From positions 16,847,469 through 16,911,468 of the forward strand of contig OZ199838.1 of assembly GCA_964304625.1 (NCBI GenBank): 64,000 bases of DNA. Direction: 5' to 3'. The position numbers were made by a program, and so were the translations under genes. Below, piece by piece: positions 1,337 through 58,341 of the stretch; position 1 is the stretch's first letter; each line of letters begins with the position of its first letter. A model generated the notes under the pieces. The model ran no database searches, was not told the origin of the DNA, and worked only from the letters and a program-made list of their open reading frames with translations. The stretch is from Kudoa neothunni. Taxonomy: Eukaryota > Animalia > Cnidaria.

Positions 1337-4212
1337 ATGATTTTATTTTATTCATTGATTATTTACTCTTGTAAGAAGAATATACGTATTAACCTAGTTA
1401 TTTGTATTTAGTCATACATAGCTGTATCAATACTGAAGTGTCGACTACAGCGCGTGAAGTTTATTATCAAATAGATCGTTCGGATGCTGACGCCTGGAAA
1501 ATGCATGTTGAACTAAAAGGTTTGGAATATACTACCGAAAAAAAATGTCGCATAATGAGAGAGAATACTGCTGGGAACAATTTTGAAGATTTTACGGGGT
1601 GCGTAAGTACAGAGGCTAATATATCTGATAAATGCATAAGAGCTTGTGCGGGCAGTGATAACCAACTAGACTATTCTAAGATGTCTCCGAGGTCAAAATA
1701 TATTTATGTAAAAGATGGAGCAGATGCAGATAATCTTAAAACTGAGGCAAATAAAAAAGGTGGAAAGGTTTATGGTTTTGAAATACGTACGATTAAATTT
1801 TTATTATGGTTTTTATGTTTATTTAGCACTATTGGTTGATCCTGATATAAAGGCTTCAACAGATACTTCACAATTATTGATGCTGAAAGCGATCACTTGC
1901 AAACCAGTGGCATGTCCAATTTACTATAAAAATGTTTTATACAAGAATGTTCCTGCGGGAGAGAAAGCTGTATAGCACAAGCTAGTGAAGCTGGCGTCAG
2001 TTCAGTTGATTATGGAGCAAGAGTTCCGTACTATGAAGTGCGTTGCATTAATTATCCAATATTCTATTACCATATGCCCAATCATTATATGAGAAAGGAA
2101 ATTGATATTTATAATCCACAGTTTTATGTTAAATACAAGTCTGCCAGTGAAAAAACTCAATATCATCTTAAATTCACTAACGCTTTTCCTAGTGAAATAT
2201 GTCTGTTCCAAATAAGAGATGCAACTGATAATGTGAATACAGGTCAAAATAAATATCAATCAAAATGCGGAGGAGGAACAGAAAAAAAGTGTTACGCCCT
2301 TTGCAATGACGTCGAACTCACTCTAACTTCTACTAAACCTATTGTTGACATTTTAATTCAAACAAGGCACAATCAATTGGAGAAAAAAAGTGATGACACA
2401 TTTGAAGGGCATACGTTTAAAAAATTTGGTAAAAATATTATTTTAAATTTATTTTAATGCCTTTTAGCTGTCATCGAGCAAGCGGAAGATGCTAGCGCAC
2501 TTATATCTTCTATTACAAGCACTGGCGTCAATATCAATGTTCCACTACTTGCACCATCCACCGAAGGTGCCACTAAATTTAATCAGTGTGCAATCAAATA
2601 CTACGTTGCAGATAGAATTAAAAATACCCCATTAACTGACGCGAAGTGCTCATCCAACAAATGTGTAGATACTTGTGGCGCTGTCTTTACAGTTCAAGAA
2701 TTGCCTGAAGGGAAACCTATTATGTTTGAAATATCCCCTACTATAATACAAGGATACACCAATTTCAAAGAATATCTATTTATTAAAACTCGTAATATGT
2801 AAATATGGCACCATTTTATTCATATGTGGTAGTTAAAAAGGATGGACAAAATTTTAATTCCGAAAAGCCAACAATGGGGGAAACGACAGCTATAGTAAAA
2901 GCAATTCAAGGCAATCCCGAAGCAGAAACCATGCCGGTGTGTGATTATTTTATAAGTAAAACTAATGAAATCTCATTCGTGGAAGCGACATGCCTTGATA
3001 GAAAACCCTGCGGAGGATTGTGTAAAGAGGTTAAGACGCTAGTGGAACTTGAACCAAACACATCCTACAACATCAAGATAGTCGCATACGCGGATTATGG
3101 TTCTATTGTACATGAGAATCTCCAAACGAGTAAAAATAAAAATTTCTGTTTCTTTTTTATAGTATAATAGCATTTTCAAGACTCACTCTCTCAGAAGAAA
3201 AACGAGACAGAGGTTTTAAAGTTGTAGGAACATTGTCAACACCAATGAGTGATGCAATGTGTCATTACAAAATAAATGCGAAAAATGGAGAAACTTGGGA
3301 TCCTGTTTATACTTGTATTGAAAATAAGGAAAACCCCACATTATCTTCATTATTAAATGTCATTGCCAGAACCGGTACAGGGAATCAACCGTCTATATCT
3401 AACGATACTTCTGTTAAATCATGTACGGAAGTACCGCTGTGTAAAAGTATTGTATTCAGTGATTATTATGATGCTTCGAAGGAATATCAAGTTTTGGTAA
3501 CAGCTGTAGGTAGATCTCGTGAGGAAACAATTATTATAAAACCAAGTATTTTCTAAAAATTATTAATATTATTTTTATATTTTATAATTATTAGTAATCA
3601 TTAAAATATTTTTTGTTCCGAATATAATAGAAACTTTATAATTTAGAATTGTTACCGGAAACTCCCTCAGATGTAACCAAAACAATATTAGTTTTTATTG
3701 TCCGTGAGGGTACTACATTGAAAGTAACAACCACACTCCCAGAAGGTAAAAACGAGAAATCCACTTGTAAATGGAAATTGATTAATTCTAACGATCTTGC
3801 AAAACCAACAATTAAGAAGTGCACTCAAATTACTGGTGAAGATTGCACAGTATTCCCAAGTTGCAAAGAATTTACAATCGAAAATGTAGTAGATACAACA
3901 AATTACCACTTGACTGTTTATCACAGTCAGGATGAAACAGTATTAGGAACAGCTGAAATAGATCAAGGTATCAATAATTATTTATACAATTTCTATTTAC
4001 TAAATTATAGGCGCAACTGGGAGTAAATCGACGTAAATTATAATATTTGTTTATTTAGACTATAAGATTATTTAGATCAGGAAACACTACAATGTAAAAT
4101 GTGAAAGGACGGATTTTTAATTTTTATTTTTAGTATCATAGTCTCTGTTGTAGTTGCAATAGTAGCTATCGTAGGAATAGGAGCTTTTATGGTATACAGA
4201 AAAAATAAATAA
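1337..4212 (+). pseudogene. Surface-protein family copy A (10 exons; signal peptide, Cys/FN3-like modules, TM), with one 2-nt frameshift in exon 3
   Basis: ATG 1337 MILFYSLIIYS|FIHSCINT after a 41-nt GT-AG intron; nine GT-AG introns at the same positions as in paralogs; micro-exons GATGSKST/SGNTTI; last exon IIVSVVVAIVAIVGIGAFMVYRKNK*. At ~1958-1966 GGAGAGAAAGC has 2 extra nt versus copy A' (GGAGCAAGC), giving TAG at 1973-1975. Could be an assembly error. Confidence 0.8.
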
Positions 4213-6226
4213 AAACATTAACATTCATATTAATCATATTAGATAGAAATTTTTCTGATTTATCTCAATTTTTATGTGTCATCAATTTAATGGTGGGTTT
4301 TGTTTTAAATAATAGGTGTTTTTTAAATATATGTCAACTTTTTTCCAGAATTATAAAGAAGTTTTTACAATTATTTACGTTATTTTAATTTTTTATAAGT
4401 AATTTTATATTATTAAATTTTATCTTATTAAAACAAAAAAATAAAAAACATGTTTTTTATATTTATTATATGATACAAATAACTATAAATTTACTCAAAG
4501 ATTGATAAGTGTAAACTTTTAATTCCCCTTTTTATTAAGATAATAAACTAATCGGTTTCTATTTTCATAACACAAATATCACTTCATAATTATTGAATGA
4601 TCTTTTTATAGTTCTTTTATACTAACTTTATTTTAAACTAATAAAGAATCATTTGTTTTCAAATAAATATATATTTTCCAAAGATTTTTATTATTTTTTT
4701 TCAAAACGCTTTTGAGATTCTTCAGTAATATGTTTGAATTGAAATTATCCACGCATTTGAAAGACTAATATTATTTTATTTTATAAATAATATATATTTG
4801 AATAAAATATTATTCTGAATATTACGCATATTGTGTAATTTTAGAAAATCCATAAGTTTCAAACTCGTTGGAACCAATATTATATGCATACGGCTGGGTC
4901 CCGATATAATGTAGTTTAATGATTATAAATTGATTTTTTATCATTATTTTACGTAGATAGTTGTAGCTGTTTCCTAGACTGAATATATCATAAAAAAATA
5001 TATTTAATCATGATTATTATATTATAAGTTCTAGCTATTTCGTCATAACAATATTTTTGTATATAATCCGATTAATCATTACATTTGTAATTTAAAAATA
5101 TATTATAATTATATACTATAGGAATTTAGAAAAAATTATTAAAAAATAATGTATTAAAGCATTATGGGGTCTATATAAATAATTAAAAATATAAATGAAT
5201 AGCAATATTGTATTTCTCGTATCTTCTATCTATAAACTGAAATTTTATTAAAATACGCAAATCATTACTTGAAAAAGTTTCAAGAAAAGGAGATACTTTG
5301 AGTTAGATCATCTCCAGTTCAAGAAATAGAAAATGGCTTTTACTATTAGATATTTCTTCATCTTTTAAAATAAGTAAGGGAACATTCACGGTTTATTTGG
5401 CGTGACTGTTTTTACGAGAATTCAATGGTAAGCGGCTCGGAGATGGACACACGTCCACTACTTTAAATCCTAAAAACTCTAATTTATAGGCGACATATTC
5501 ATTCTAATTTTTTAAACCTGCTCTTTTTAATTACTTTTATCATTTAGTACCTAAATAATCTCCCAGGAGCTAGAAATAATTTAATTATAATAAAAACTTA
5601 ACCTATTGGAATAATGTTGTCTATTGGAATAGCTAACCTTTTTATTAAGAGATGACAACAATTTAAGTCATCGTTATAGGTAATCACGTAAACTTCCAAT
5701 AAGCAGGATCCTTACATTAATTAAACTATTCATATTGTTTTTTTAAGGACATTAAAATATAAATATAAGGCCGAGTTAGTATATACTTTAATCGTTGCAT
5801 GTAAAATCTGTTAATCTAAATTTTAATAGCTTTCCAATTAGAATTTTTATTGAAACTAACAAGCATTATGTTTATTAATAAATATGACGATATTAGATAT
5901 AATGAGAAATTAGAAGCAGTTAGAAAGACTCAAAAATTGTCATGAGTAAGATTTTTTAATAAAAATCAAAAATTTGAGCGTAATTTAAACTAATATTTCA
6001 AAAATGAATGTGAAAACGTTGTGACGTAAATAAAATCGTTTTCAAAAATCTTAGAATCATAGTTATTGAAGAATATTTCTGCATTTTCATGATATGCTGA
6101 AATAATTGACCACATTTAGATAATATAGGGGACAAATTGAGAAAATTAGATAAATCATTTTATACGCGCCACATAATTTTTCCTTCAGTTAATGCGAGGT
6201 TTTATTGAGTAACAGAACCCCTGGTC

Positions 6227-6891
6227 TAGAGTTTCCCAACCTTCTATCTATCGCGCCCCACCTTTTTAAAAAGTATTGATTTTTTTAATTTAAATTGTTT
6301 AAAAGATCGAGTAAAGCTCACTATAACAAAAATTTGAAAGCAATTAATATATACATCTTTTCCAGTAAAATTAAAATGTGTTCGATCTGATCTAATTTAA
6401 TTTATCAATGGACCATAAAAACTAACATCATTAGTTCTTCATTCCGTCAAACACAGCATAAAATAAAACTCATGATAATCCAACCTTTATTATGAAAGAT
6501 TTTTGTGTACATGGGACTAATTAATCAAAAATGAATAATATAAAAATAATAAATATTATATTAGGTTCAATCAAAAAAGGAGATGTACCACTCTAAGTGA
6601 AACAAGATGGAGCTTCAAACTATTCTGATTCTATTTGGGTAAAGGACGCGTTAAATATTATTATTAATTTTTATATAATTTGTCATTGTTTTTTTTATAT
6701 TTTTTACGGTGTTAATCGTCACTTAAAAATAAGCGGTATCGAAAATCGTGATATTGACTTCAAAGTATGTCATACCGCCCAATTATTTCACTATTATCTG
6801 TGTCACACCAATACTCAGGATTTTTCACGTCCCATGAGAGCGGTTCATTGATTGTTTAAAAATTTCCACGCCTTACCGGTAGGAAACACTG
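6227..6891. mobile_element. Non-autonomous hAT (Charlie-like) element; inverted copy 39833-40494
   Basis: Ends TAGAGTTTCCCAACC..CGCGCCCC and ..GGAAACACTG (GGGAACCACTG in the other arm) resemble CAGTGKTTCCCAA-type TIRs; TSD degenerate. Confidence 0.5.
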
Positions 6892-7938
6892 TCCAAACCA
6901 ATTTGAGATATCTTACACCAACGCTTTATTATATAAGATTAAAATAGATTTTTTTATTCAATTATTTCCACCTCTTTGACTATTTGGTTCAATCCAAGCA
7001 ATTAAATTATGGCATAGGCTATTGACACGGTAAAATTTAATCCTAAACAGCAACTCCGCACGCGCGACGAGAATTTTTAATCTCAGCAACTCCAACTTAC
7101 AAGCTGGTTATAAATTTAATTTTTTAGAATCTGTTATATTTAATTATTTACCATGCCAATAGCTACTCCCTTTAATTATACTAGGTTTAGTCGACTGTAT
7201 CTCATATAAAATCTAAAAATAAAAAAAAGTTGAATTGCGGCAGAATAGCTCGGCCATATTTTACATATTAATTTATTCGACGATTAATCCAGATAAGTAT
7301 ATCAAACAAAAACTTAAACTTAAATTTCGGTGCAAATCGTTTTACCTCCGTATAATTTAAATTCAATAAATAATCATTATTTATAGACATTTAAAACAAA
7401 AATATATAAGAATTAAATTCAAACTTTTTTTTCTATATTATTTTGATTATGATTATCATAAAATATTATATCATGATCGTTGATTGTAACTACCGTGACG
7501 CACGAATATACCCGATTTCGTAATATTTGTATAAGTAACACTCCGTTAACTTTAGTACTTTGCACATATTAGTTTTAAAATTCCGCACGACACATTAATA
7601 AAATATGAAAACTTTTATTTCTATCTCCTACACGACGTTTTTGTATCGCGATTAAAATATTTTCGTGCATTTTAAGATAATTAATTTTCATAAATTTTTG
7701 ACGTGTTCTTTTTTCCTAGATTTCCGCATTCTTTGAGCTTTGAGATTTATTTAATAGAGTATATACAGCGGAACCTCGATTATCCGGAAATCTCGCTATC
7801 CGGAATTTGGAAGAACTATTTAATCATATTTCCGGACCTTAGAATTGCTACGCAATACTAAATTACTTCGCAATACTGAGCGATTTCATATTAATTTTTT
7901 GTTCATAAGTATTTATACGCAGTACTTGCTTCGTAATA

Positions 7939-9997: not shown

Positions 9998-11640
9998 CAG
10001 TGTGTTGTACGTATAATGTAATTCCCACGGGACCGAGGAACAAGTGCTAAATAGCCAGATATGTTGGTTATTTGACACCTGGCGACGTTCGCGCCTTTAT
10101 TATAAAAACAAGTGTTTATTAATAATTTAAAATCTACTTAGAACTACTAAAATAATCTAATATTTTAGTTTGAATCGTGCTTTTTCTGATGCCTTATAAA
10201 GTTCCAACTAAAGATGATGAAGGGGGTCCCAAACATCAGATCCATATTGTTTGAAATAATCTTTTAGATATTCAAAACATTTTAATGCCTCTTTTCAATT
10301 GTACAATATATTTTTGATTTCGGCTTCTGCATGTTCAGAAGATGACTCTGGAAGGATCACTGAATTTGTTTGTGTATCATATTGACACACTCTAACGAAG
10401 GATTCCTCCATCATGGATTCTAATAGATTAGTACCATCTTCTTCATCAAATGACAGTTTTGAAATAAAGTCATTGTAAGTCTGGTCAACATAGATTAATT
10501 TATTGGATAGATCGTCGGGAATATTATTATTATCATCTTCGAAAATAAAGCCAGCCTTTTTAAAACAATTTAATATTGTCTGTGGCTTGATATTTTCCCA
10601 AGATTTCTTTATCAACACCAACGCATCCAAAAGATCAATCGGCTTTATGTCTATGTTATTTTTGACGTGGATGGTATATTTTTCGATCAAATTTTTCTTA
10701 TAAATTGACTTGAACGAATTGATCACACCCTGATTCATCGGTTGGAGTACGGAGGTTGTGTTTTGGGGGAAATACATTATGGTAACGCCGGAAAGACTTA
10801 ATGGAAGGTGACAGCTCGCATTATCCACGAAAAATGAAACATACGTATTTTTGTTTGATTAAATATTGGGTAAAGATTTTAATGGTCGTCCAAGCTTTTT
10901 TAGTTGAATAATAAGGAATCGGTTTTTTTAAATTTTAAATCATCTTGGTTGACTATGATGACCAACGACTATTGGCTCAAACTTTTCTCCAATTAAGGGA
11001 GCCCTAAGTAATAGTGTTAATCGTTTTTTGGCCGTTTAGTACATTTGGGATTTGAGTCGTTAGACAAAATATTACTTCTTCCTAAATAGAATCTATAAAA
11101 TCTCATGTCTTCGAGAAGTCTTATTAAATCGACTTATCACGCAATTAAACTTTAAACTTTAAGAACTGAAATATTAACATTATAATGGATAAGTAATGAA
11201 TGAGAAACATGCATCTCAATATTCATTAATTTAGTTTAAATAAAATGATAACCATATACAGAACCAACAAATTTGAAACTTTTACTTGGATGTTGTTCGT
11301 AGAATAAGGAAAGTTCATCCAAGATAAAGATTTGATTTTCTTCGTAATTCTTCATTATAGATTCTAATTGAGTTTTCCAATCCGATACAACATCATCGCT
11401 CACGATGTAAGAATCCCCCTGAGAGTTAAATCTTCTAAGATAAAATATATCATTAAAGCCACGAAACTATTTGTAATTGACGTTTTTCGAATCTTTACAG
11501 CATTCTTTGCTGATTTCGCTGCGATAAAAGCTCCAATTTATTTGGTCTTATTCAAGTGATCCGCTAGTATACACAATTGCTGATTTCAACATTATCTCCT
11601 TTTTAAAAGTTTTTCTGTTTTTTAACTAAGTCACTCTCAT
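9998..11640 (-). mobile_element. Tigger/pogo (DDE_1) transposase pseudogene
   Basis: ORF 10295-10828: DNASCH...FPQNTTSVLQPMNQGVINSFK...W..I...TILNCFKKAGF, typical of DDE_1; upstream fragments are disrupted; TA|CAGT end at 9998. Confidence 0.8.
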
Positions 11641-12593
11641 AAAAATTGATAATTTATGATTTATTTGTTAGAATTCCAATTAAGGTTGATATTGAAAAAA
11701 GTTTAAATGCTTCACAATTTGGCTGTTTTTTGATGGTTACGGTTTAAAAAACTTGATGATTTCATGGTTTTCCTTAATAGAATATCACTTTTTACACTTT
11801 TCTCAGCCTTGTTTTACAAAACTGAATTGTTGCCCCGGATTTAATATCTAACCCGGGCGAAAAAGGTGCCAACTACCCATCAACGCTTGAAAACATATTT
11901 GATTTTTAAATTTTGTTTGAAACATTTTTTAACATAATAATATAAGTTTTAAAATGTATTGACAACCCTTTTTTAAGTTTTTGTCTTCTACATTATTTAA
12001 TTTAGTTAGATATTCTATAGGTACCAAATACCCCTCACCCACAGTAGTGTTTTTAGATACGCCTGCCATTTTAAATTTAAGAGCGAAAAAATCGGACATC
12101 GTTGGCAACGCTACCCGAAAACCTATTTTATGTTAACGAACTACATGATTGTCTAATAAAAATTTTAATTCTCGAATAGATAAGTATGTATGATTATAAA
12201 TTAGTGATGAGTTCGCAGTCAATTAGGCTAGATTTTACTACAAATCCCATTTTTGGAAAAATTAATCAACACAAGGTTTAGATCTGCCAATAGTTATCTA
12301 ATGTAAATACCTGTGGAGAATAATATGAACATTTTATTTCATGTAAATATATTAAGTGATTTTTTGAAATTTAAATAAAGAAAATAAACTAGACGCTCAT
12401 TGGCACGGTGAGTATTCATTTTTTTATGTGTTATAAAATAGAATTCTAATTTAATAATAAATATCTTATGATTACTAATCTTATGTTTTGTTATAAATTG
12501 TTAATAGTATTCATATTATTAACCAAACTCAATCAGATTGAAGCATTTAATAAATATAACGAATATTTTCGTTTATACATTATAAAAAATAGA

Positions 12594-15492
12594 ATGAGGA
12601 TTTCACTTTATCAACTGGGAGTACTTTTGCTTGCTATATGTAACTAGGAATATTTATTTGCGGTTAAATTGAATAAAGTATAGTCAAATGTACTTCTATG
12701 GTTGCATCTGACCCTGAAGCTCAAGTCCCACCTCTTACGAATGAACTCAGATATCAAATAGTAGAAGATAATAATGAAAAGAAACTTCAACTTATATTGA
12801 GCGGAAGCACATACAGCGAAGAAAGTTACTGTCAGATTAAAAAGTCGAATGATGTAGCTACAGAATATCAAGTTATAGATTCATGCCCTGAAACAGATCC
12901 AAATAATGGTCAAAATAAATGTGTTAGAAAATGTTTGGGAAATGGCAATAAGCTGGGACTTGATAAATTTTCCCCAAGAACGAAATATATTGTTGTTTTT
13001 AAAGGGGAAAATCCTGCAAACGCCGCTGGGAAAAGCAATGGGGGAACTGTATTTGGACTCGAGTTACGTAATAAATGATTAATAAAAATTCTTCAAACCG
13101 AATTGTTTTTAGGATTACTTGTCAATCCAAAGGTCGCTGTGACCACTACAGCAGATAGTAAATTAAAGTTGAGCACAAAAACTTGCCCACCAGTCAAATG
13201 TCCTATATACTACAAAGGAGTCGAATATGTAGCTACTACGCAAGGTACTAACTGCGATACCGCCAATAATTCAAACGAAGTTGAATTTGATTTAATGATA
13301 CCTCATTACGAAATGAAATGTGAAAATTATCCAAGTTTCTTTTATAAGCTTCAAAATGATTACACTCTATCGAAAATTGATGTTTACAAACCACAATATT
13401 ATGTAGCTTACGCTTCGGCTCAGAAAAATAAATATTCACTTAAGTTCACGAATAAATTTCCTTTCGAAATATGTCGCTTTAGTATTAGAGATGGGGAAAC
13501 CCAAGCTAATGCTGATGAAACTGCAAAATATTATGTATCAAATTGTGGTGGGGAAGATAAACCGTGCATTGCTCCTTGCAATAATGTAGAGCTTACTTTC
13601 ACTGAATCGAAGACAATATTAGAAGTGTTGATACAAACAAGACACTTTCCACTAGAAAAAGTCAACGATGAATATAAAGGTTATACACAAAAGAAATTCG
13701 GTACGAATTTAACATTTAAATATTTAATTATGCTCGGATAGTTTTCACAGAAACTACTTCAGAAAATGGTTTATTAATACCTGCTATAACACATGATACT
13801 GCTTCTTTAAATGTGCCCCTTTTTAAACCTGATTCAAACCCTAAATTTACAAGTTGTATCGTCACCCATTTCGCTGCTGATAAACCATTGTCTACAACTA
13901 ATGCAGGGGCCACAAAGTGTAGAGTAAGCAACGAAAGTTGTTCCAATGACTGTACTTCAGCCTTAGTAATAAAAGAACTTTCCAGTGGAAAGCCATACAT
14001 TCTTGTAATAACACCTGGACCTGCAGGTACGGGTGGCGTACCGGAAAATTTCAAAGAACATATATTCATTAGGACTGGTATAATAATTGATAAATATGTT
14101 GTGTATAATAAATATGTAGAAAAAGCCACAGGCTCAACATTCCCTGCCATAACACCAATAATAGATGAGACAACGGCGGTGATTACAGCCCTTACAGGAG
14201 GTGGAACAATCGCAAAAGAAGACGTAACGTGTGCATATTATATCAGCCCTCGCGGAAAGGATATATATGTATGTGCAATGTGCATTGATAGTTATCCTTG
14301 CCGAGGTTTTTGCAAAGAAACTAAACAAATTGTTGGTTTAACTCCAGGAACTGAATACGATCTTAAGATAGTTGCTCACAAAGAGTATGGATTCAAAGAG
14401 CATCAAATAAAAACACGTATGAAATAATTGAATGATAAAAAATGATTAAATTCATAGTAATGTCAAAGCTGACACTTAAAAAACAATTTACGGACAAAGG
14501 TTTCAAAGTGGTGGGTTCGTTGTCGACACCAGATCCCTTCGCTCTATGCAGCTACAAAGTTAAAGTTAAAAAGGGGAAAAATTTTGAGTTGATCCACGAA
14601 TGTCCAGCTACTCCACCCCAAACAGTAGCAACTCCAAGCAAGCCTAAAAACATACCAAAGGTTTCTAAAATTGAGGTTGCTAGATCAGCTGCTGATCGAA
14701 AACCTACATCCAACCCTGAAAATAACACTGTCACGACAACATCATGCACTGAATTACCTACATGTTCCGAAATAATATATACTAATCTTTACGATCGTTC
14801 CAAAAAATACCAGATGTTGGTAACTGCCGTTGGTGGTCGTTCAGAGGAAATCACTATTGATATCCCTGAAAGTAATTCGATTTTAATAATACTTCTAACG
14901 AAATTATTTTCATTAATTTTTAATATATTAGATAATTTTTCAATAAGTGAACATGTCAACAAAAAAGTAATCATTGGCATAGAACGCGAAGGGAACAAGC
15001 TTAAAGTTACAGCTCTACTTCGGAGCGATGCCCCGGAAAGCACATGTGGTTGGGAGTTACGTAACTCTTCAGAAGATGGAAAGAGTTTGGTAAAATCGTG
15101 TAACGGTGCCAATGACAGTGGTTGTGAAACCCTTCCATTATGTAAGGGTTTTGAAATTCTTAACATAGAAGATACTAGTGATTATCATCTCACTGTATAT
15201 GTGAGCAGTGATCCAACAATAATCGGTCATGCGATAATCAAGCAAGGTAAACAAAATAGTTACTAAATTTGATAAAATATTTTTAGGTGAATCTCACGAT
15301 ACAATGAAATCAACGTAAGTTGTGTAAGTTTTTTCATTTTTAATATTAATTTAGATCAAAAAATACCATGTATTTTTAATTACGTTTAATTATGTTTGAT
15401 TATTATTCCTTAGAATTATAGCTTCGGCAGTAGCAGGAGTCGTAGTCGTTGCTATTGGAATCGGAGTGATTATTATGAAAAGAAAGAATTGA
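12594..15492 (+). CDS. Surface-protein family copy B1, 833 aa type-I membrane protein
   Basis: Hand-spliced exons 12594-12639, 12684-13067, 13113-13700, 13742-14077, 14120-14416, 14458-14871, 14932-15246, 15287-15314, 15355-15369, 15414-15492. Total 2502 nt, open frame, all GT-AG. Signal peptide MRISLYQLGVLLLAIFKCTS; C-terminus IIIASAVAGVVVVAIGIGVIIMKRKN*. Confidence 0.9.
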
Positions 15493-15554
15493 ATACCACT
15501 CATTACATTATTATGAATTTTTTTTTAATTTTATATCTTATTTTTACAACATTA

Positions 15555-17738: not shown

Positions 17739-17744
17739 ACTTAG

Positions 17745-28448: not shown

Positions 28449-28619
28449 ATTCAACCGATATATAGATTAATTGCGTGTAATCCCTAATTAATACGTCCTT
28501 GTGTGTTTGGGCCAAACATATGATAACAAATTATTTAATGTATATAATTCTAACAATTTTAATTATTTATTTAATGAGATAACTTATTATAAATTTTTGT
28601 ACGCACAAGCGTTATTTTT

Positions 28620-44900: not shown

Positions 44901-46783
44901 AAAAACATAATAAAAATTCAATCATACGTATTTCAAAACCATAAACCTTTCCACCTTTTTTATGTTCTTCATTTTTAAGATTATTTGCATCTGATCCATC
45001 TTTTACATAAATATATTTTGACCTTGGAGATATCTTAGAATAGTCTAGTTGGTTATCACTGCCCCCACAAGCTCTTATGCATTTATCAGATATACCATCC
45101 TGTGTACTTACGCACCCCGTAAAATCTTCAAAGTTGTTCCCAGCAATATTCTCTCTCATTATGCGACATTTTTTATCGGTAGTATAGTCCGAACCTTTTA
45201 GTTCAACATGAATTTTCCAAGTGTTAACATCTGAACGAACTATTTTATAATAAACTTCACGCGCTGTAGTTGACACTTCGGTATTGATACAGCTATATAT
45301 GGCTAAAAACAAATAACTAGGTTAATATGTATATTCTTCTTACAAGAGTAAATGATCATTGAATAAAATAAAATCATTTTTTGATTCTTCGAGGAAATAT
45401 CTTACCGATGGTTAATCTGATATTGTCTATAAAGAATAATTCTCGCGTATTATACGGTATTCATGCCTTTCAATAAAGTTAAATTGATTTTTAGTTAAAA
45501 TTAAATATAAATAATGCTATATTAAGAAAATAATACAATTTCTAATTATAATCTCATAATGATATATAAGAAATGCTATTGATCTTCTAACTCTTGCGAC
45601 AATCACCACAATTCATAATTTAAAGCCACAACAAAACATGTTTAATCTTATAGGAATTGAATAAATTATTATTTTGCCAGAAAGCATAATTAAGAATTTT
45701 TATAACATAACTAATTTAATATTTGTCGGAATAATTGGCAAAAATATATACAAATATAATTTTTCATAATTTATCTTCAAAAATCAATTAACACAGTTTG
45801 GATCAGTTGATATAATCGAGTGCAAAATTATTGATTATCTAAAAAAATAAAATTCAATTAAATTTTTGGCTATATTACAGAATCTGTAAAAACTTCGTCG
45901 GAAAAAACCAAACATCGGTAAACTTAGCATATAGTTTTTAAAGTAAATTAAACGTCAAAATATATACAAAGAGAGCACTAATTTCCATTTCAACAAACTT
46001 TCTTCTAAACAATAAATCGATTATATACCCAAGAAAACTCTCCGGATTCTTATTTGTGGCGTTTATATAATTCCTTTTAAAAGTACCCCAAGTCGCCTCT
46101 ATTTTGTTTGTGTGAACTCCATCACTCGAAAAAATCTCCTTTTGTGGACAACGGTTCCATGAAAAAAACCTAAATTTTCCAAATTTTTGTATCCGTCCAT
46201 ATTGTTGTTGAACCGTCTCCCACGTTATCGATTATTATTCTCTCAATAACGTCTCGGTTTCTGTATTGAGAAATCGTTAGGAAGCAGTTCTCTTCTTCGT
46301 CAATTCCACCCACCGTCCAATGTTGCTGATTTTTCATAACACGGCCAATATTATATTTCTTCTTCGAGATCGTGGTCAAGTCAATTTGAACAATTATTCC
46401 ATCACTTCCAATTTTTGTGAATTTATCATTCAATTTGGAAGTCATGAAATCTCTTATAATAGTCTTCCAATCCATTATGGTTGAATTTGACGTGATATCA
46501 AGGTGTTGTCGAACCTAATCAAATGTCGTAGTTGGATGCTTGATAAACGATTTCCACAAGGGGAACTTTGACATTTCGAAAATGGTCCCAAACCTCAATA
46601 AGCACCTTTTATGGCATTTGTTACATCTAATCTGGTAACCATCGCCCGTATCTTTACGCGGAACCACACTCACACTATCTCCGCTCGTACATTGGCAAAA
46701 GCTATGTAATAGTCCGATATTTTGTAAATTTTAAATTTTGTAATCGATATCACGAAAATAGCCATAACCAAAAATGGTTATTT
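39000..46783 (-). repeat. Outer right arm of large inverted duplication (pairs with 1-~7700)
   Basis: Reverse-complement match to 1-7700, alternating identical and clearly diverged patches. Confidence 0.93.
42504..45377 (-). CDS. Surface-protein family copy A' (intact inverted partner of A)
   Basis: ATG 45377 MILFYSMIIYS..; exon 3 open across the site frameshifted in A (ORF 44262-44921); same TM exon ending YRKNK*. Confidence 0.9.
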
Positions 46784-48720: not shown

Positions 48721-51700
48721 TGTTAGCTGCATGCATAGAGGCCATATTATTAAAAGCTACGATATATATCGAACTAGGAATACTAAACGGTTGATTACTA
48801 ATAATCACCTTGGTAACATTGCATCCTCTTCAAAATTGTCTTCTATCAACCGTCGTTGAATGAAGGGTTTTAATTTATCAAAATTAGTCACCAAAACTTT
48901 ACCTTGTCCCTCTAGTCTATAGACAGAGTCAGACAATTTTTCTTTAACTACGTAGGGGCCTTTGTAATATGGTTCCAATTTACTTTGTCTATTATTAATG
49001 ACCAACCAAACTTTTTCACCTGGGTTATAAGGTTTTCCATAGGCTTTTTTATTTTAGGCAGTCTTAGTCCTGCCCAAATTAGCTTTGAGGTTATCCAATG
49101 CAATTTGTTTCGCCAGTCTCAGATCAGTTCCAATGCATTTAACATAGTCATCATGTGAATAATTATGTGCGTTTAGTTGAGATATCGTTTCAAGTGGTGT
49201 TCGTACTTCCCTTCCCAGCATCAAATAATTTGGAGAATATCCAGTTGAACTATGGGTTGATGATCGGTAAGCCATCATCACTGTAGGTAATAAGGTATCC
49301 CACTCGTTGTCCTTATGGACAAGCTTGCTCACCATATCAATCAACGTTCGATTCAGTCTTTCTACCATCCCATCCGATTTTGGGTTAAATGCACATGTTC
49401 TTGTTTTTGATATGCCGAACATTTTACACATATTTTGAAAAAGTTTCGATTCAAAATTTGTTCCTTGGTCAGTGTGAATTACCGATGGGAGTCCAAATTT
49501 TAAAAATACAGCACCCGTTAACTTCCTGACCACAGTATGTGCTTCTTGGTCCTTCATAGGAATGGCTTCTCCCCATTTTGTAAAATAATCTTGAACTACA
49601 CAAATGAATCGATTCCCCTTATATGTAGTGGGTAACGGTCCAACCATATCAATAGCAATCCGTTCCATCGGATAACTTGACACACTTGTATCCATTTCTG
49701 ATACAAACTTTCTGGTGGGTCGGTTCCTCCGAGCGCATATTTCACAGGATTGACACCAATTTTTTATATCCACATTTTGTAATGGCCAATAATAGTTTCT
49801 GCGTATATTTTGGGCAACTTTTTCATGTCCTAGATGACCACTTGTAACATTATCATGTGCCAACTCCAATATCATTGATTTTAAGCTTTCAGGTATCACA
49901 ACACGTAATGTAACTTCCTTTGTTTTAGGGTCAACAAATTCTCTACATAGAATACTATTATCCAAGCGTAAGCATTTCCTCAACAGCCATAATGTTTGTA
50001 TCCGTTTATCCAACTCTTTAGGAACCTTCTTTGGCATTCGATTACTCTCAATCCAGCCGATAATTTTATTCAGAATGGCGTCATTGCGTTGTCTATTGAT
50101 AATAACATCATTTGATAATCCTTGTATCGATAGAGCCAAAGCTTGGGTTATTTCAGGAACTCGAGATAAAGCATCTGCATTTCCATGCATCTTACCTTCT
50201 CTGTAAACAACATCGAATTCGTATTGACTCAAATGCTCCAACCATCTAGCTACCTGACCTTCTGGCTTTTTAAAAGACAATAGCCACTTCAACGCATGGT
50301 GGTCAGTTCTCGCTAAGAATTTTTTTCCATGGAGGTAAAATTTGAAATGATTTATAAAATGAACCAGAGCCAAGAGTTCTTTTCTCGTAACACTATAATT
50401 CCTTTCTCGATCTAATAACGATCTACTAGCGAAAGCGACCACTCGCTCCTCCCCATCAATTACTTGCGACAAAACTGCTCCAATAGATTGATTACTGGCA
50501 TCAGTATCCAAAATAAATGATTCATTCCAATTCGGATGTGCCAACAATACACATTCCATTAATTTCTTTTTTAGCATATCAAATGATTTTTGACATTCTG
50601 GCGACCAATTCCACGGTACGTCGTTCCGTAACAAACGACACAGAGGATTCGAAATTTGAGAGAATTTATCAATGAATCTTCTATAATAGTTAAGCAAACC
50701 AAGGAAACATTGTAATTCAACAATTTTCGTTGGGGTAGGCCAATTTTTAATTGCTTTCACTTTATTTTTATCTGGTTTGATTCCATCAGCATTGATAACA
50801 TGTCCCAAAAATGTAACTTCGCTTTTGTAATAAACTGATTTTTCGTTATTAATTTTCAAGTTATACAACTCTAATAATGTAACAATTTTCCTCACGTCAT
50901 TTTTGTTAGTTTCCAAATCTTTACTGAATATAATTATATCATCAAGATACACAAGACAACAGACACCAATACATTCTTTCAAAATCAGGTTAATCATCCT
51001 TTGAAAAGTGGCTGGTGCATTGCACAGTCCAAACGGCATCTTGACAAATTGATACAAATCATCAACACCATAGAATGCGGTCTTTTGTTTATCTTTAATA
51101 TCTATAGGTATGTGATGGTATCCATCTTTCAAATCTAACACCGTGAATACATTAGCATTACCCAATGTATCCATGACATCATCAATCCTCGGAAGTGGAT
51201 ATGAATCTTTCACTGTCACTGCGTTTAACCTTCTATAGTCAACACATAATCTCCACTTTCCATTTTTCTTTGGAACCAAAACAGAATTGAAAGCCCAATC
51301 CGAATTAGATTCCTCAATAATACCACGCTCCAGCATTGAACTAATTATCTCATTCATTTGTTTTCTTTTGTGGTATGGTATTCTTCTTTTAAAATCTTTT
51401 ATTGGTTTGGTATTGTTTGTATCAATTTTATGCACCACAGCTACTTTTCTCGTCATTGACTTGATTCCACAATTACCGATAACGGGAGCTATTATAGGTT
51501 TCTCAACGTTATTTGATATAAGTTCACTGTCAATTATAAGCTCAAAATTCCATACTTTCAAAATATTGAGACCAATGATACAATCATGTATCAAATTTTC
51601 GACAACTAATAACTTTTTTCTACACTCTTTCCCATTATACTGAAGTGACACGTCTATGGTTCCTTTGATATTTAGTCTATTTCCTGTGGCTGCCACCAGT

Positions 51701-52639
51701 GGTAACTCATCCTTCGCCCTCAGCAGAGGAATACCGCTCTTATTGACAAATGATAAACTAACCAAGGAAACTTGCGCTCCTGTATCAATTACTGCTCTAA
51801 TATCTTTTCCATTAATATGGCAATGCAGAAATAAAAAATCCACATATTTAAAACCACTAGATTTATATAGTTTGCAATTGTTTTTTATGTGTCCTTTCTG
51901 GCCACATTTGAAGCATCTCAGCGTCTTCTTCTTTTTTACGAGTGTCTTTTCCAACTCATCCAGGCGGTCGATCAATCTTTGGATAATATTTTGCGAATCC
52001 ATAGCCAAAACTTCATTCCTTCCGTTTTCGGCGCGGGTGTTAAATTTGCTCGCAGCGAATTCTAAACGTTCCGCGAATTGGTATACCAAATCGAATGACT
52101 CAAAATCCTTCACAAGCAAAGTTCTTTTCGTTTCGCTGTTACTCAAACCATGTATGAACTGGTTTTTTGCGATCTCTTCCTTTGCATTCTCAGGGATATT
52201 GCTGTGAGCCAATCGGGTTTTCCTCCTGATTTCTTCCGCAAACTCAGTTATTGTTTGCCCTTCTCTCTGCACACAATCCACCAATTCTCTCTGTGCCACG
52301 TATCTATCTTTTTTCTCACCAAATCTTGCTGTTAAATAAGCCTTTATTTCGTGGTAGGATGAATTTATTGTGTATCCAGCCTCCTGAACAATTTGGAATA
52401 CGTCAGCCGATAATAATACAAGCAACTCTAACGTCCACCTCTCAGGTAGAATTCCGTCATGCAGCAATAGTATCTCCAGTTTTGCTATCCAAGCATCAAC
52501 ATTCCGTCCATTAAAAGGTTCCACTTTAGCCACTGCGCCAATGTTAGCTGCATGCATAGAGGCCATATTATTAAAAGCTACGATATATATCGAACTAGGA
52601 ATACTAAACGGTTGATTACTAATAATCACCTTGGTAACA
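48721..52639 (-). mobile_element. Ty3/gypsy LTR retrotransposon, 3919 bp, full length
   Basis: Identical 98-bp LTRs 48721-48818 and 52542-52639 (TGTTA..TAACA), 5-bp TSD ACTAT, PBS TGGCGCAGTGG (tRNA-Ser-like), purine-rich GAAGAGGATGCAA before the 3' LTR. Confidence 0.97.
49054..52629 (-). CDS. Gag-Pol polyprotein (CCHC knuckle, protease, RT, RNase H, integrase)
   Basis: CFKCGQKGHIKNNC, DTGA, LCVDYRRLN, YLDD, DTDAS, HHCC + DDE integrase in gypsy order. After one TAA at 49054-49056 the same frame continues through the GPY motif to TGA at 48805. Confidence 0.96.
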   Translation of the reverse strand: MIISNQPFSIPSSIYIVAFNNMASMHAANIGAVAKVEPFNGRNVDAWIAKLEILLLHDGILPERWTLELLVLLSADVFQIVQEAGYTINSSYHEIKAYLTARFGEKKDRYVAQRELVDCVQREGQTITEFAEEIRRKTRLAHSNIPENAKEEIAKNQFIHGLSNSETKRTLLVKDFESFDLVYQFAERLEFAASKFNTRAENGRNEVLAMDSQNIIQRLIDRLDELEKTLVKKKKTLRCFKCGQKGHIKNNCKLYKSSGFKYVDFLFLHCHINGKDIRAVIDTGAQVSLVSLSFVNKSGIPLLRAKDELPLVAATGNRLNIKGTIDVSLQYNGKECRKKLLVVENLIHDCIIGLNILKVWNFELIIDSELISNNVEKPIIAPVIGNCGIKSMTRKVAVVHKIDTNNTKPIKDFKRRIPYHKRKQMNEIISSMLERGIIEESNSDWAFNSVLVPKKNGKWRLCVDYRRLNAVTVKDSYPLPRIDDVMDTLGNANVFTVLDLKDGYHHIPIDIKDKQKTAFYGVDDLYQFVKMPFGLCNAPATFQRMINLILKECIGVCCLVYLDDIIIFSKDLETNKNDVRKIVTLLELYNLKINNEKSVYYKSEVTFLGHVINADGIKPDKNKVKAIKNWPTPTKIVELQCFLGLLNYYRRFIDKFSQISNPLCRLLRNDVPWNWSPECQKSFDMLKKKLMECVLLAHPNWNESFILDTDASNQSIGAVLSQVIDGEERVVAFASRSLLDRERNYSVTRKELLALVHFINHFKFYLHGKKFLARTDHHALKWLLSFKKPEGQVARWLEHLSQYEFDVVYREGKMHGNADALSRVPEITQALALSIQGLSNDVIINRQRNDAILNKIIGWIESNRMPKKVPKELDKRIQTLWLLRKCLRLDNSILCREFVDPKTKEVTLRVVIPESLKSMILELAHDNVTSGHLGHEKVAQNIRRNYYWPLQNVDIKNWCQSCEICARRNRPTRKFVSEMDTSVSSYPMERIAIDMVGPLPTTYKGNRFICVVQDYFTKWGEAIPMKDQEAHTVVRKLTGAVFLKFGLPSVIHTDQGTNFESKLFQNMCKMFGISKTRTCAFNPKSDGMVERLNRTLIDMVSKLVHKDNEWDTLLPTVMMAYRSSTHSSTGYSPNYLMLGREVRTPLETISQLNAHNYSHDDYVKCIGTDLRLAKQIALDNLKANLGRTKTA

Positions 52640-55442
52640 ACTATACATTGAAAGTGGTTCGGAGGACTTGGATGAAATAATTAATGAGCCAGTCAACAAT
52701 GTTGACGATCATGATGCTTACGATAGCGATACGAGCATTGAAGATATGACCCTTGTCCCTTTTGTTGTCTACAAAGATGGAGAAAAATGGTGTAAAACTC
52801 CAACTAGGGTTGAAAGAAGGCCTAAAATGAAAAATATTTATAATGTAAAAGCGGCATTTACAAATAAAGCTTTACGGAATGGCCAAACTCCCATGAGGGC
52901 TTTTAGTCATTTGTTGACCAATAAAATATTGAAAAAGATCCAATATTGTACCAAAAAATTTATTGAGCAAAAAAAAACAAATATCTAAAGGATAAATATG
53001 GCCGAGTTGAAAGTTTTTTTGGAAGCTATCTTATTAATTGGTTTAATGAAAGGCAAAAATGAAAACATCCAAAAATATTGGACTGAAAAATATGGCCTTC
53101 AATTACTAATTGCAAAAATTACAAGAAATCGCTTTGAAGACTTTGCAACTTGTCTCAGATTCGACAAGAGAAGAACCAGGGATAGAGAGGATAAACTTTC
53201 CCCCATCAGATGTATATTTGATGGGTTTATAAAGACGTGTAAAGAAAGTTACAACCCACCTTCCCAATTGATTGTGGATGAACAGCTTGTCACATTCAGA
53301 GGCCGTTGCCCCTTCAAAATGTTCATTCCTTCTAAGCCTGGAAAGTATGGGATAAAAATATGGGCGTTGTGTGATGCAACAAACGCGTATCTATGCAATG
53401 CAAAGATATATATTGGCAAAGAGAACGGTGTTGTTGAAACCAACCAAGATGAAAATGTGGTAAAGGATTTAGTTACACCTTATTTAAAAAAAGGTCGTAA
53501 TGTTACCACGGACAACTTTTTTACCTCATTGTCAGTTGTGAGATACTTAATGTCTCATCAAACAACAATTGTAGGGACTTTCCGTAAAAATAAAAACTTT
53601 CTCATCCCTGAATTTCAATCATCAAAGGGAGTACCAAACGATGTGAAATTTTTATTTCAGGATAAATTTAATTGGTAAAATACAATCCCAAGAAAAATAG
53701 ATGTGTGGTACTTATAAGCTCCACACATCGAGATTGTGATATTGATCCTGAATCGAAAAAACCAGAGATCATAAATTATTACAACCAAACCAAAGGAGGG
53801 GTTGATACGCTTGACCAAATTGTCCGCTACTATTCCACCAAAAGAGCCACTCGTCGTTGGCGCTTTTCTTTAACATCATCGATATATCCGCATATAATGC
53901 ATATCTCCTGTATGCTTATCGAAACCCGCAATTCAAAAATACTCATAAAAACAAATCCCGAAGAGAGTTTTTAAAAATGTTAGCTGAAGAATTGCTAGGA
54001 AACGATGATATCAATTTTGAAACCATCCTAATAAAAGGGAAGGAACCTCCTTCTGGAAGAGGCACATACCATATTTGCTCAATAAACAAGAAAAGCGGGA
54101 GAATTTGCTCAAATTGCGACAAATTTGTCTGCGAAAATCACCGAATTGAAAATATAGAATGCGATTTGTGTAACAAAAAATAAAATATATTGTATTATTT
54201 ATCTATTTTATTTCGCCATATTTTTATACGAATTTATATTTTTTATTAAATTTGATTATATCTACAAAATATATCATATTTGTGTAATTTACCTATTTAG
54301 ATTTTAGACAAAACGATTAGAATTAATGTCATTATAATAAGATGGTATAGATAGATTGGACATGTAATTCAGTTCAATGGTGGAAAATATTAAATTATCG
54401 TTTTTAGTTATAAACAAAATAATTTATTGATTATATCTTTATTATAATAGTTTCTTGCCAATTAATCAAAACACCATCTAAATTAAACCGCTAATTACAA
54501 TCATAAAATAACAATTTTGAAAGTTATAAATTTATTTTAAATACAAAAATTATATGATCTAATGTCATTTTGTTTCTTTTATACGATATCGCTTTTATGT
54601 AAGTTTATATTTGCAAATTATTTATTTTTTTAATGCGCGCGCCTAAAAAAGTTGATTTTAATGTTTTAAATTAAATTTTTTTTCTCTTTTTTTAACTTAA
54701 AACTAAGCTGTTCTATTGTTTTATTTACCTTTATTGTCATATAGTTTCAAATATAATTATGCTACGATTAAATTGCATAGGACCACAGCGGTCCTCTTCA
54801 GGTATTCGTAGGGGTATTATGTTATACACACGTGGTATTTTAAATTTTAAAAAATTATTATTATTATCCGTAAATAAAATTAACAAAAATTGTTTTATAT
54901 GAAAAATTTATCGCCGATTCATGCGCACACAATCAAATATTAAAACTTCTCACGTAAATCCATTTTATGAATGCAAAGTGCAAAGTACGTGAAGAGTTTA
55001 TAGTAATAATTTTAAAGTTAAAATGGCTAAGTATATATGATTATTAATAAAGATGATATAGTTAATTGTGTTAAATTTTACAACAAATCCTATTTTTAGA
55101 AAAATTAATCATCACGATGTTTAGATGTACCGCTAGTTATCTGCAGTAAGTACCTGTGGATAATAGTAAAAACATGTTATTACAAGGAAAAATATTATAT
55201 TAATTTTTTAGCATCGTAAATAAAGAAAATAAACTAGGCAATCATCGATATGGTGAAGTCCCATCCTTGATAGGCGTTGTAAAATAGAGCTCTAACTTAT
55301 CAATAACTATGTTATACTTACTAATCTTATGTTTGTTATTTATAAATTGTTAATAATGTTCATACTATTAACCAAACTCAATCAGATTGAAGTATTTACA
55401 AAATATGCCGAATGTTTTCGCCTATACACTATAAAAAATATA

Positions 55443-58341
55443 ATGAGGAGTTCACTTTACCAATTTAGTGTATTTTTGATTGTTTTATGTAACTAGGAAT
55501 ATTTATTTGCGATCAAACTAAATAAAATATAGTCAAATGCACTTTTCAGAATGTATCCAGCGAAGGAGGTCAAGTTGAAGATCAAACTCCTACGAATGAA
55601 CTCAGATATAAAATCGTAGAGGATAATAAAGAAAAGAAAGTTCAACTTATATTGAGCGGAGGCGCCTACGGAGCTAGTGATTATTGCCAGATTAAAAAAG
55701 CGAATGATGGAGCAACAGAATATCAAGTTATAGATACATGCCCTGGGACAGAGAGCCCAAGCGGCAATAACAAATGCGTTAGAAAATGCGAGGGAAATAA
55801 CAACATTTTGGAATTTGACAAATTTTCTCCAAGAACGAAATATATTGTTGTTTTTAAAGGTAATGATGCTGCAAACGCCGCAGGGAAAAGCAATGGAGGA
55901 ACTGTATTTGGACTCGAATTACGTAATAAATGATTAATAAAAATTCTTCAAACTGAAATGTTTTTAGGATTACTTGCCAATCCAAAGGTCGCTGTGACCA
56001 CTACAGCAGATAGTAAATTAAAGTTGAGCACAAAAACTTGCCCACCAGTCAAATGTCCTATATACTACAAAGGGGTCGAATATGTAACTACCACGCAAGG
56101 AGGTGATTGCAATGCCGCCAATAATTTAAACGAAGTTGAATTTGATTTAATGTTGCCTCATTACGAAATGAAATGTGATAATTATCCAAGCTTCTTTTAT
56201 AAGCTTCAAAATAAATATACTTTATCGAAAATTGATGTTTATAAACCACAATATTATGTAGCTTACACTTCGGCTCAGAAAAATAAATATTCACTTAAGT
56301 TTACGAATAAATTTCCTTTCGAAATCTGTCGATTTAGTATTAGGGATGGGTCATCCCAAGCTAATGCTGAAGGAACTACAAACGAATATATATCAAATTG
56401 TGGTGGGCAAGATAAACCTTGCTATGCTCCTTGCAACAATGTAGAGCTTACTTTCACTGAATCGAAGACAATATTAGAAGTGTTGATACAAACAAGACAC
56501 TTTCCACTAGAAAAAGTCGACAATGCATATGAAGGTTATACACAAACGAAATTCGGTAACAATTTAATATTTATATATTTAATTATGCTCGGATAGTTGT
56601 TAATTTATCTACTTCGGCCAATGATGAATTAATATCTGCCATAACTCATGAAAATCTGTCTTTAAATGTGCGCCTCTTTAAACCTGATTCAAATCCTAAA
56701 TTTACAAGTTGCACTGTCACCCATTTCGTTGCTGACAAACCACCACCTACTAATACCGGGGAAACAAAATGTGGAGATAACGATAATTGTTCTAATGACT
56801 GTACTTCAGCCTTAGTAATAAAAGAACTTTCAAATGGGAAGCCATACATTATTGTAATAACACCTGGAGCAGATGGTACGAGTGGCGTACCAACGAATTT
56901 CAAAGAACATATATTCATTAGAACTGGTATATTAATTGATAAATAAAGTTTGCATAATAAATACTTAGATAAAGCAACAAGCCCAACATTCCCTGCCATA
57001 ACACCAATAATAGATGAGACAACAGCGACGATTGCAGCCCTTACAGGAGATGGAACTATTACAACAGAAGATATAACATGTGCATATTATATCAGCCCTC
57101 GCGGAAAGGATATATACGTATGTGCAATGTGTATTGATAGTTATCCTTGCCGAGGTTTTTGCAAAGAAACTAAACAAATTGTTGGATTAACGCCAGGCAC
57201 TGAATATGATCTTAAGGTAGTTGCCCACAAAGGTTATGGATTCAAAGAGCATCAAATAAAAACACGTACGAAACAATTGAATGATAAAAAATGATTAAAT
57301 TTATAGTAATGTCAAAACTGACACTTGAAAAACAATTTACGGACAAAGGTTTCAAAGTGATGGGTTCGTTGTCGACACCAGATCCCTTCGCTCTATGCAG
57401 CTACAAAGTTAAAGTTAAAAAGGGGAAAAATTTTGAGTTGATCCACGAATGTCCAGCTACTCCACCCCAAACAGTAGCAACTCCAAGCAAGCCTAAAAAC
57501 ATACCAAAGGTTTCTAAAATTGAGGTTGCTAGATCAGCTGCTGATCGAAAACCTACATCCAACCCTGAAAATAACACTGTCACGACAACATCATGCACTG
57601 AATTACCTACATGTTCCGAAATAATATATACTAATCTTTACGATCGTTCCAAAAAATACCAGATGTTGGTAACTGCCGTTGGTGGTCGTTCAGAGGAAAT
57701 CACTATTGATATCCCTGAAAGTAATTCGATTTTAATAATACTTCTAACGAAATTATTTTCATTAATTTTTAATATATTAGATAATTTTTCAATAAGTGAA
57801 CATGTCAACAAAAAAGTAATCATTGGCATAGAACGCGAAGGGAACAAGCTTAAAGTTACAGCTCTACTTCGGAGCGATGCCCCGGAAAGCACATGTGGTT
57901 GGGAGTTACGTAACTCTTCAGAAGATGGAAAGAGTTTGGTAAAATCGTGTAACGGTGCCAATGACAGTGGTTGTGAAACCCTTCCATTATGTAAGGGTTT
58001 TGAAATTCTTAACATAGAAGATACTAGTGATTATCATCTCACTGTATATGTGAGCAGTGATCCAACAATAATCGGGCATGCGATAATCAAGCAAGGTAAA
58101 CAAAATAGTTACTCAATTTGATAAAATATTTTTAGGTGAATCTCACGATACAATGAAATCAACGTAAGTTGTGTAAGTTTTTTCATTTTTAATATTAATT
58201 TAGATCAAAAAATACCATGTATTTTTAATTACGTTTAATTATGTTTGATTATTATTCCTTAGAATTATAGCTTCGGCAGTAGCGGGAGTCGTAGTCGTTG
58301 CTATTGGAATCGGAGTGATTATTATGAAAAGAAAGAATTGA
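55443..58341 (+). CDS. Surface-protein family copy B3
   Basis: ATG 55443 MRSSLYQFSVFLIVL|FKCTFQN; same 10-exon structure; exons 6-10 almost identical to B1 (offset +42849); ends MKRKN*. Confidence 0.9.

Follow-up and report, generated by a model that had tools for sequence, protein, structure and literature searches.

We analysed a 64,000-nucleotide (nt) stretch of the genome of the myxozoan Kudoa neothunni (contig OZ199838.1, positions 16,847,469-16,911,468; hereafter the window, in whose own numbering most features are given). It carries six related genes that are predicted to encode single-pass type I membrane proteins, with ectodomains built from cysteine-rich modules resembling the fibronectin type III (FN3) domain. 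The published genome has a length of 40.2 Mb, an N50 of 12.0 Mb and a GC content of 30.4%, and comprises three chromosomes and a mitochondrion; it comes from yellowfin tuna data, and its annotation, for which almost no parasite RNA was available, predicted ~5,300 genes (PMC12239612). Our genome searches covered the 40,260,978-base assembly, which consists of four contigs. The window itself is AT-rich (~30% GC) and contains many eukaryotic transposon remnants.

The six genes are of three types, A, B and C. On the forward strand lie A1 (1337-4212), B1 (12594-15492), C1 (22779-25808) and B3 (55443-58341); on the reverse strand lie B2 (33368-36266), an inverted copy of B1, and A2 (42504-45377), an inverted copy of A1. 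B3 belongs to a third, direct copy of the B unit, and C1 is a single copy at the centre of a palindrome. We placed the splice sites by starting from exon pieces that are conserved and accepting only models with an open frame and GT-AG borders. The exons of A1 occupy 1337-1370, 1412-1786, 1827-2428, 2468-2791, 2833-3129, 3171-3545, 3647-3967, 4011-4032, 4076-4093 and 4134-4212; those of B1 occupy 12594-12639, 12684-13067, 13113-13700, 13742-14077, 14120-14416, 14458-14871, 14932-15246, 15287-15314, 15355-15369 and 15414-15492; and those of C1 occupy 22779-22824, 22862-23308, 23350-23925, 23968-24306, 24349-24657, 24697-25251, 25286-25561, 25606-25624, 25668-25685 and 25730-25808. In A2, the exons are 34, 375, 597, 324, 297, 375, 321, 22, 18 and 79 nt long.

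A first, sequence-only reading of this DNA had proposed six 10-exon genes hidden by tiny introns, with B1 splicing to an open frame of 833 amino acids. Its outer coordinates are exact, from the A1 start codon at 1337 to the B3 stop at 58341, and the layout recurs in all six loci, five of which are intact. B1, B2 and B3 each yield an open 833-residue protein without an internal stop, C1 yields 887 residues and A2 yields 813. The frame of A1 is broken: compared with A2, exon 3 has a net gain of two nucleotides near 1956-1960, leading to a stop (AGEKAV*) and to 37 stops downstream. We read A1 as a pseudogene; an error in the assembly is the less likely alternative.

Introns in all six genes are 34-60 nt long with GT-AG borders; only intron 6 is longer in the A genes, at 101-104 nt. 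Exons 2 to 7 each have a length that is a multiple of three and phase-1 borders. Symmetric phase-1 exons are the classic arrangement of shuffled extracellular modules in animals. Exon 1 encodes a predicted signal peptide, exons 2-7 encode seven modules, two of them in exon 3, and a pair of micro-exons (19-28 nt, then 15-18 nt) encodes a juxtamembrane linker rich in Ser, Thr, Lys and Gly. The motif KSTS[GK]NT, which spans the micro-exon junction, is conserved in both A and B types and so lends support to exons of this size. With introns this small, annotation based on open reading frames (ORFs) or on hints would likely miss or fragment the genes.

The same structure extends to other members of the family. 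Across ~40 further loci in the same genome, a phase-1 GT-AG intron is found at 130 of 136 module junctions; the median lengths of these introns are 34-44 nt, and their mean GC content, 37% at the exon 6/7 junction, is 14-20% at the other four. In-frame read-through is possible in only 18 of the 130, the others holding stops or shifting the frame. The downstream modules are conserved even though most introns block the frame, so splicing would be required. C1 is one of the rare cases in which, by chance, two introns (3 and 4) can be read through in frame, and a 441-residue ORF (23340-24665) results; across the matching stretch, most paralogues have TAA stops. Because of this phase and frame pattern, together with ratios of non-synonymous to synonymous substitution (dN/dS) of 0.07-0.79 between recent copies, spliced and selected coding genes are by far the best reading of these loci.

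Two features of the gene models could affect the protein products. The exon encoding the transmembrane helix is reached through the two micro-exons, with ~40-nt introns between (15247-15413 in B1, 25562-25729 in C1, 3968-4133 in A1); if the first of them were skipped, the reading frame would change and a truncated product lacking the helix would result, which could be a secreted isoform. In all six genes, introns 7-9 read as ordinary introns around the two micro-exons, and nested twin introns need not be assumed. In addition, intron 1 of C1 (22825-22861) has two in-frame acceptors 9 nt apart, giving an intron of 28 or 37 nt and affecting three residues where the predicted signal peptide ends; an internal GTAAGT is present.

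The predicted proteins share a common topology. Each intact protein has a single C-terminal helix of high hydrophobicity (Kyte-Doolittle mean over 19 residues 2.8-3.6), and exon 10, the last, encodes this helix and a basic tail of four to five residues (KRKN, (Y)RKNK or KKKRD) before the stop. We assigned signal peptides by eye and by hydropathy; the N-terminal hydrophobic stretches are weaker than the transmembrane helix, and only that of B1 reaches a Kyte-Doolittle value of at least 1.6. From exon 2 to exon 7, the cysteine counts are 4-5, 8, 4, 4-5, 4-5 and 4, corresponding to seven modules of four. Subfamilies A, B and C are only 38-42% identical, and 28 cysteine columns are invariant among them; the motifs SPR[ST]KY, C.NYP.F[FY]Y, [IV]LIQTRH and FKE..FI[KR]T each occur once in every intact gene. 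The sequence-only reading had described diverged subfamilies that keep their cysteines and motifs, and type I proteins with a cysteine-rich, FN3-like modular ectodomain and a short basic tail; these predictions agree with the spliced models, in which the cytoplasmic part is essentially absent. Lacking a cytoplasmic domain, the proteins would be unable to signal on their own.

We then examined the fold of the modules with sequence profiles and predicted structures. All database and structure searches were run exon by exon, and the joined models were used for frame checks, dN/dS and local comparisons. Against the Pfam fn3 profile (PF00041), exon 5 of C1 scores 24.8 bits with a cut-off of 25 (E = 2.6e-5), and the other exons score 15-17 bits or have no match. 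A profile of the family, searched against 1.84 billion representative proteins, gave 51 matches. The strong ones are short unnamed ORFs from ENA/Logan assemblies, and the named ones are ordinary FN3 proteins reached through the exon 5 module, including a DSCAM-like protein and an FN3 protein from Littorina, which is matched in five stretches (E = 1.6e-13). In the Protein Data Bank (PDB), the exon 5 profile picks out sequences of titin, fibronectin, NCAM2, Dscam and contactin, and exons 4 and 5 are linked to each other by jackhmmer.

AlphaFold models, which cover exons 2 and 3, were compared with known structures. The exon 3 model, built from a 46-sequence alignment with a predicted local distance difference test score (pLDDT) of 83, consists of two tandem beta-sandwiches and matches two-domain FN3 pairs of cytokine receptors and fibronectin (Foldseek E = 3e-4, probability 1.0). 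It superimposes on FN3 domains with Z scores of 6.5-7.0 and a root-mean-square deviation (rmsd) of 2.4-3.0 over 71-80 residues; its second half (residues 94-191) superimposes on FN3 domains of gp130, sDscam and fibronectin (Z 6.5-6.9, rmsd 2.7-3.0, 76-80 residues). The exon 2 model (pLDDT 85) is likewise an FN3-type sandwich, its best match being the SD3 domain of IFNAR1 (Z 6.8), with other FN3 domains at 6.8 or below; Foldseek found no match for it in the PDB at E <= 0.001. Searches of the ESM Atlas, by features for exon 3 and by shape for exon 2, returned only generic or unnamed neighbours. In these models, the modules of exons 2 and 3 take the form of the seven-stranded FN3-type beta-sandwich of ~90-100 residues, and the earlier description of FN3-like, cysteine-bridged modules is supported at the level of fold and cysteine pattern, the disulfides themselves being expected from that pattern.

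The family is far larger than the six members first proposed. A genome-wide search for the membrane-proximal module, which exon 7 encodes, gave 309 first-look candidates and at least 150 scored matches (E <= 1e-22); 144 of the scored matches are free of stops. They lie on all three chromosomes, often in arrays. At least 28 copies fall within positions 37000-460000 of contig C3, a large array near a chromosome end, and a further copy lies 3 kb past the end of the window (OZ199838.1, position 16914632). All six ectodomain exons are open in 31 of the sampled loci.

Relatives also occur outside K. neothunni. Contigs from three other public samples, SRR31175926, SRR33849685 and ERZ795007, have the same module order at 23-48% identity, and one of them (L043) ends in an exon 7-like module and a transmembrane exon, followed by YKKK. 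Because relatives with the same architecture exist in other samples, the family predates K. neothunni and evolves fast. Another contig (L046, from SRR31175926) carries an NTPase-like gene, SNF5/INI1, RPS29 and one family member, and its flanking genes are collinear with K. neothunni contig C3:1349800-1357600 at 41-61% protein identity, which indicates a distinct but related organism. This contig points to an unassembled related myxozoan in SRR31175926. We do not claim an orthologous position for its family gene, since in K. neothunni the family gene lies on the opposite side of the SNF5/RPS29 block.

As the sequence-only reading had supposed, and weak matches to fn3 apart, neither Pfam nor the 1.84 billion representative proteins gave a named homologue of the family. 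The same profile search found no one-to-one orthologue outside myxozoan-like sequences and no family of single-copy orthologues. A word-seeded search of 5.8 billion clusters with the 440-residue ORF gave no match, and the 20 best external matches that we checked include no named protein apart from generic FN3 proteins. The family is not described in the literature that we searched (Kudoa and myxozoan surface proteins, fibronectin type III, FN3). The best explanation of these results would be a very large, undescribed, myxozoan-restricted multigene family of putative single-pass type I membrane proteins.

We next consider how the copies vary. In every exon compared between recent copies, dN/dS is below one; exon 2 has values of 0.36-0.79. 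Per-exon mean pairwise identity, computed across 31 paralogues, is 42% for exon 2, the distal module, 47% for exon 6 with its Pro/Thr-rich loop, 50% for exon 4, and 57-62% for exons 3, 5 and 7, the proximal exon 7 module being at 62%. These comparisons show copies that are under purifying selection, with the N-terminal, membrane-distal module the most variable.

The arrangement of the six loci reflects their duplication history. Self-BLASTN reveals an inverted repeat forming a palindrome of ~46 kb (1-46783), whose arms surround a unique centre holding C1. The outer pair of arms (1-7741 and 38971-46783) is 93-96% identical, and the inner pair (12119-17744 and 31116-36767) is 94% identical. The third copy of the B unit, comprising the gene and a hAT-like fragment downstream (55001-59876, forward strand), is a direct repeat with 90.7% identity to 12154-17028. 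The order is thus A1, B1, C1 at the centre, B2 and A2, followed by a block of Gypsy and piggyBac elements and then B3. Recent segmental duplication (90-96% DNA identity) has turned three gene types into six loci, which are not six independent lineages.

Among the B units, identity is mosaic along the sequence. Between B1 and B2, it reaches 100% in exons 5-10 and in the DNA that follows them, and lies at 76-98% in exons 2-4; the B3 protein is 87-91% identical to B1 and B2, in mosaic blocks. We compared the units in adjacent 200-nt windows. At 13087-13286, B1 is nearest to B3 (93%, versus 76% to B2); at 13687-14086, B2 and B3 are near-identical (96-99.5%) and B1 is the outlier; and from 14087 to 17744, matching 31116-34773, B1 and B2 are 100% identical over 3.6 kb, introns and flank included. 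Since nearest neighbours differ in three ways between adjacent segments, no single duplication history fits, which argues for gene conversion or segmental exchange. The 3.6-kb identical tract is either a very recent arm-to-arm conversion or a point of the assembly to verify. The outer parts of the B arms are only 73-98% identical, versus 100% for the inner 3.6 kb.

Taken together, we consider it probable that these loci belong to a protein-coding, myxozoan-restricted family of type I FN3-like proteins, displayed at the surface and acting by adhesion or capture. Seven FN3-type modules of four cysteines each would be presented on the plasma membrane of plasmodial or spore cells, and the proteins would be rod-like, disulfide-stapled binding or coat molecules. 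Without signalling of their own, they would act through adhesion or the capture of ligands. The local cluster was built by inverted and direct segmental duplication and is being reshuffled by gene conversion; diversity would be generated through duplication and segmental exchange. The architecture suggests a role as a surface coat, an adhesin or a self/non-self recognition molecule, as the sequence-only reading had put it.

Several points weigh against this explanation. Plasmodia of K. neothunni live inside muscle fibres, which bears on the compartment that a disulfide-rich ectodomain would face. Structural Z scores of 6-7 are in the middling range and show the fold class only. Alignments by hhalign of exon 7 with exon 5 (E = 0.012) and of exon 2 with exon 5 (E = 0.16) are not significant; the cysteine patterns line up in both. 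The N-terminus of the A type is weakly hydrophobic and lacks a basic n-region, and signal peptides were called by eye and hydropathy only. The support for splicing and expression comes from DNA evidence, and the published annotation was itself made with almost no parasite RNA (PMC12239612). In three RNA runs with the same host label, no reads of this organism were found and none fell on 22600-25900; a DNA run passes contiguously through the introns.

The design is familiar from animal proteins with FN3 arrays. NCAM, Dscam and contactin, as well as gp130, IL-2R gamma and IFNAR1, share with the predicted Kudoa proteins tandem FN3-type sandwiches on a single-pass type I protein and modules encoded by symmetric phase-1 exons. 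In contrast, the Kudoa family has no immunoglobulin domains and no WSxWS motif, has four invariant cysteines per module and tails of only four to five residues, and comprises at least 150 paralogues that diverge fast. Cell adhesion in animals classically relies on type I proteins with FN3 arrays, and the nearest sequence and structure matches include NCAM2, Dscam, contactin, titin and fibronectin; with the module order conserved across distant species, as expected of a structural role, it is conceivable, if somewhat doubtful, that the proteins mediate contacts among the parasite's own cells, in cell-in-cell stages or among the valve, capsulogenic and sporoplasm cells during spore building. However, more than 150 fast-diverging copies, a hypervariable distal module and gene conversion are unusual for housekeeping adhesion in an organism with few cell types, and the tail offers no cytoplasmic motif for linkage to the cytoskeleton. 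Surface display for adhesion or capture is the explanation that we prefer.

A second resemblance is to parasite variant antigens. Giardia VSPs, and the VSP-like proteins reported for the myxozoan Sphaerospora molnari, also combine a signal peptide, a cysteine-rich ectodomain, one transmembrane helix and a basic tail of ~5 residues in a large parasite family; in the Kudoa family, by contrast, tails differ between subfamilies, the fold is FN3-like and each gene has nine introns. Giardia-type VSPs carry numerous CXXC motifs and a conserved C-terminal pentapeptide; this identification was rejected for the Kudoa family, which has zero or one CXXC per protein and tails (KRKN, RKNK, KKKRD) that are not conserved. 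VSP-, RIFIN- and STEVOR-like families reported for S. molnari are the nearest published concept (bioRxiv 10.64898/2026.02.11.705288). A likeness of another kind is found in the oncosphere antigens of taeniid cestodes. There, EG95, TSOL18 and 45W form a parasite-specific, secreted or membrane-anchored FN3 multigene family with about one domain per exon; they differ in having one or two FN3 domains and small families, and we take the likeness as a lead and not as a sequence relationship to the Kudoa family.

Antigenic variation would go further than surface display. One or a few of the at least 150 genes would be expressed at a time on a host-facing surface, and conversion mosaics would escape fish immunity, much as with trypanosome VSGs or Giardia VSPs. 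We regard this as unlikely. In its favour, the copies are many and tend to cluster, 28 of them falling within the first 0.46 Mb of contig C3; the N-terminal exons form mosaics whose nearest neighbour changes between adjacent segments; the distal module is the most variable in the comparison of paralogues given above; and the design of signal peptide, cysteine-rich ectodomain, transmembrane helix and ~5-residue tail resembles that of Giardia VSPs (10.64898/2026.02.11.705288). Yet dN/dS stays below one throughout, even in exon 2, no shared expression-site or silencing element turned up (none was sought), and the family is known here from its genes. Plasmodia inside muscle cells may also meet little antibody.

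In its most developed form, this idea would describe a recombination-driven system of variant surface antigens in an animal: ~150-300 FN3-like coat genes in palindromic and tandem arrays, exchanging N-terminal segments, with one or a few expressed and serving immune evasion. We think that such a system is improbable on the present sequences; if it were true, it would be a metazoan counterpart of the VSG, var or VSP systems, made from an animal adhesion fold.

More doubtful still is the idea of receptor subunits that bind ligands, sense host factors and depend on a separate partner chain for signalling, in the manner of cytokine-receptor alpha chains. For exons 2 and 3, the highest-ranking matches in Foldseek and VIA are FN3 pairs of class I and class II cytokine receptors (IL-2R gamma, gp130, LEP-R, IFNAR1). 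However, these matches are of generic FN3 quality (TM-score 0.3, Z < 8), WSxWS is absent from every copy, no partner is known, and a family of at least 150 would be atypical. Identification as a class I cytokine receptor was itself rejected, with no WS.WS match in the five intact proteins.

Decaying repeats or transposon cargo, with ORFs open only since the duplications are recent and introns that are modelling artefacts, would account for genes that lie among transposons and are known from DNA, and for the A1 frameshift, but this reading is very improbable: ORFs are open at 38-42% identity between subfamilies and 23-48% between species, 28 cysteine columns are invariant with dN/dS below one, phase-1 GT-AG introns stand at 130 of 136 junctions with intron lengths varying freely and exons staying multiples of three, and neither a transposase nor terminal repeats around the gene are common to the duplication units. 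Transposon cargo was rejected, given nine conserved introns and paralogues that are alike in coding sequence only.

A coding, surface-displayed FN3-like family would be of broader interest. Myxozoan genomes are extremely reduced, and the molecules on myxozoan surfaces are almost uncharted. At least 150 intact-looking genes would amount to ~3% of the predicted gene set, placing the family among the largest of the genome. For a fish-muscle parasite of commercial importance, its members are concrete candidates for molecules at the interface with the host or between cells, and could serve as diagnostic or vaccine targets or as markers of life stages. The locus is also a clean example of how palindromes and gene conversion expand and reshuffle a module-per-exon, phase-1 architecture.

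The sequence-only reading had found no other non-transposon genes in the 64 kb; the remaining ORFs of the window are transposon-derived or unassigned. A Ty3/Gypsy gag-pol ORF (49057-52680, reverse strand; Pfam RVT_1, RNase H, integrase, aspartic protease and zf-CCHC) and remnants of a piggyBac-type transposase (52638-54180, forward strand; DDE_Tnp_1_7, E = 1.2e-49) flank the family genes. A pogo/Tc1-like DDE_1 transposase remnant (10298-11466, reverse strand; E = 3.1e-16) interrupts one arm of the palindrome. Pieces of hAT/BED and IS1595-like elements are also found in the window. Every B unit is accompanied by a pair of ORFs just downstream of the gene (16636-17590, 31270-32224 and 59484-60440). 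Neither ORF has a Pfam match; one starts with DLSTSGTSGLSVLR..., and the other contains ...PLVYWENSK, resembling the dimerisation end of hAT transposases. A DDE transposase of IS1595/ISXO2-like (Merlin-type) character recurs in decayed form at 273-829, 26857-27440, 29229-29618 and 45941-46514, and one such copy is found in each outer arm of the palindrome, just upstream of the A genes.

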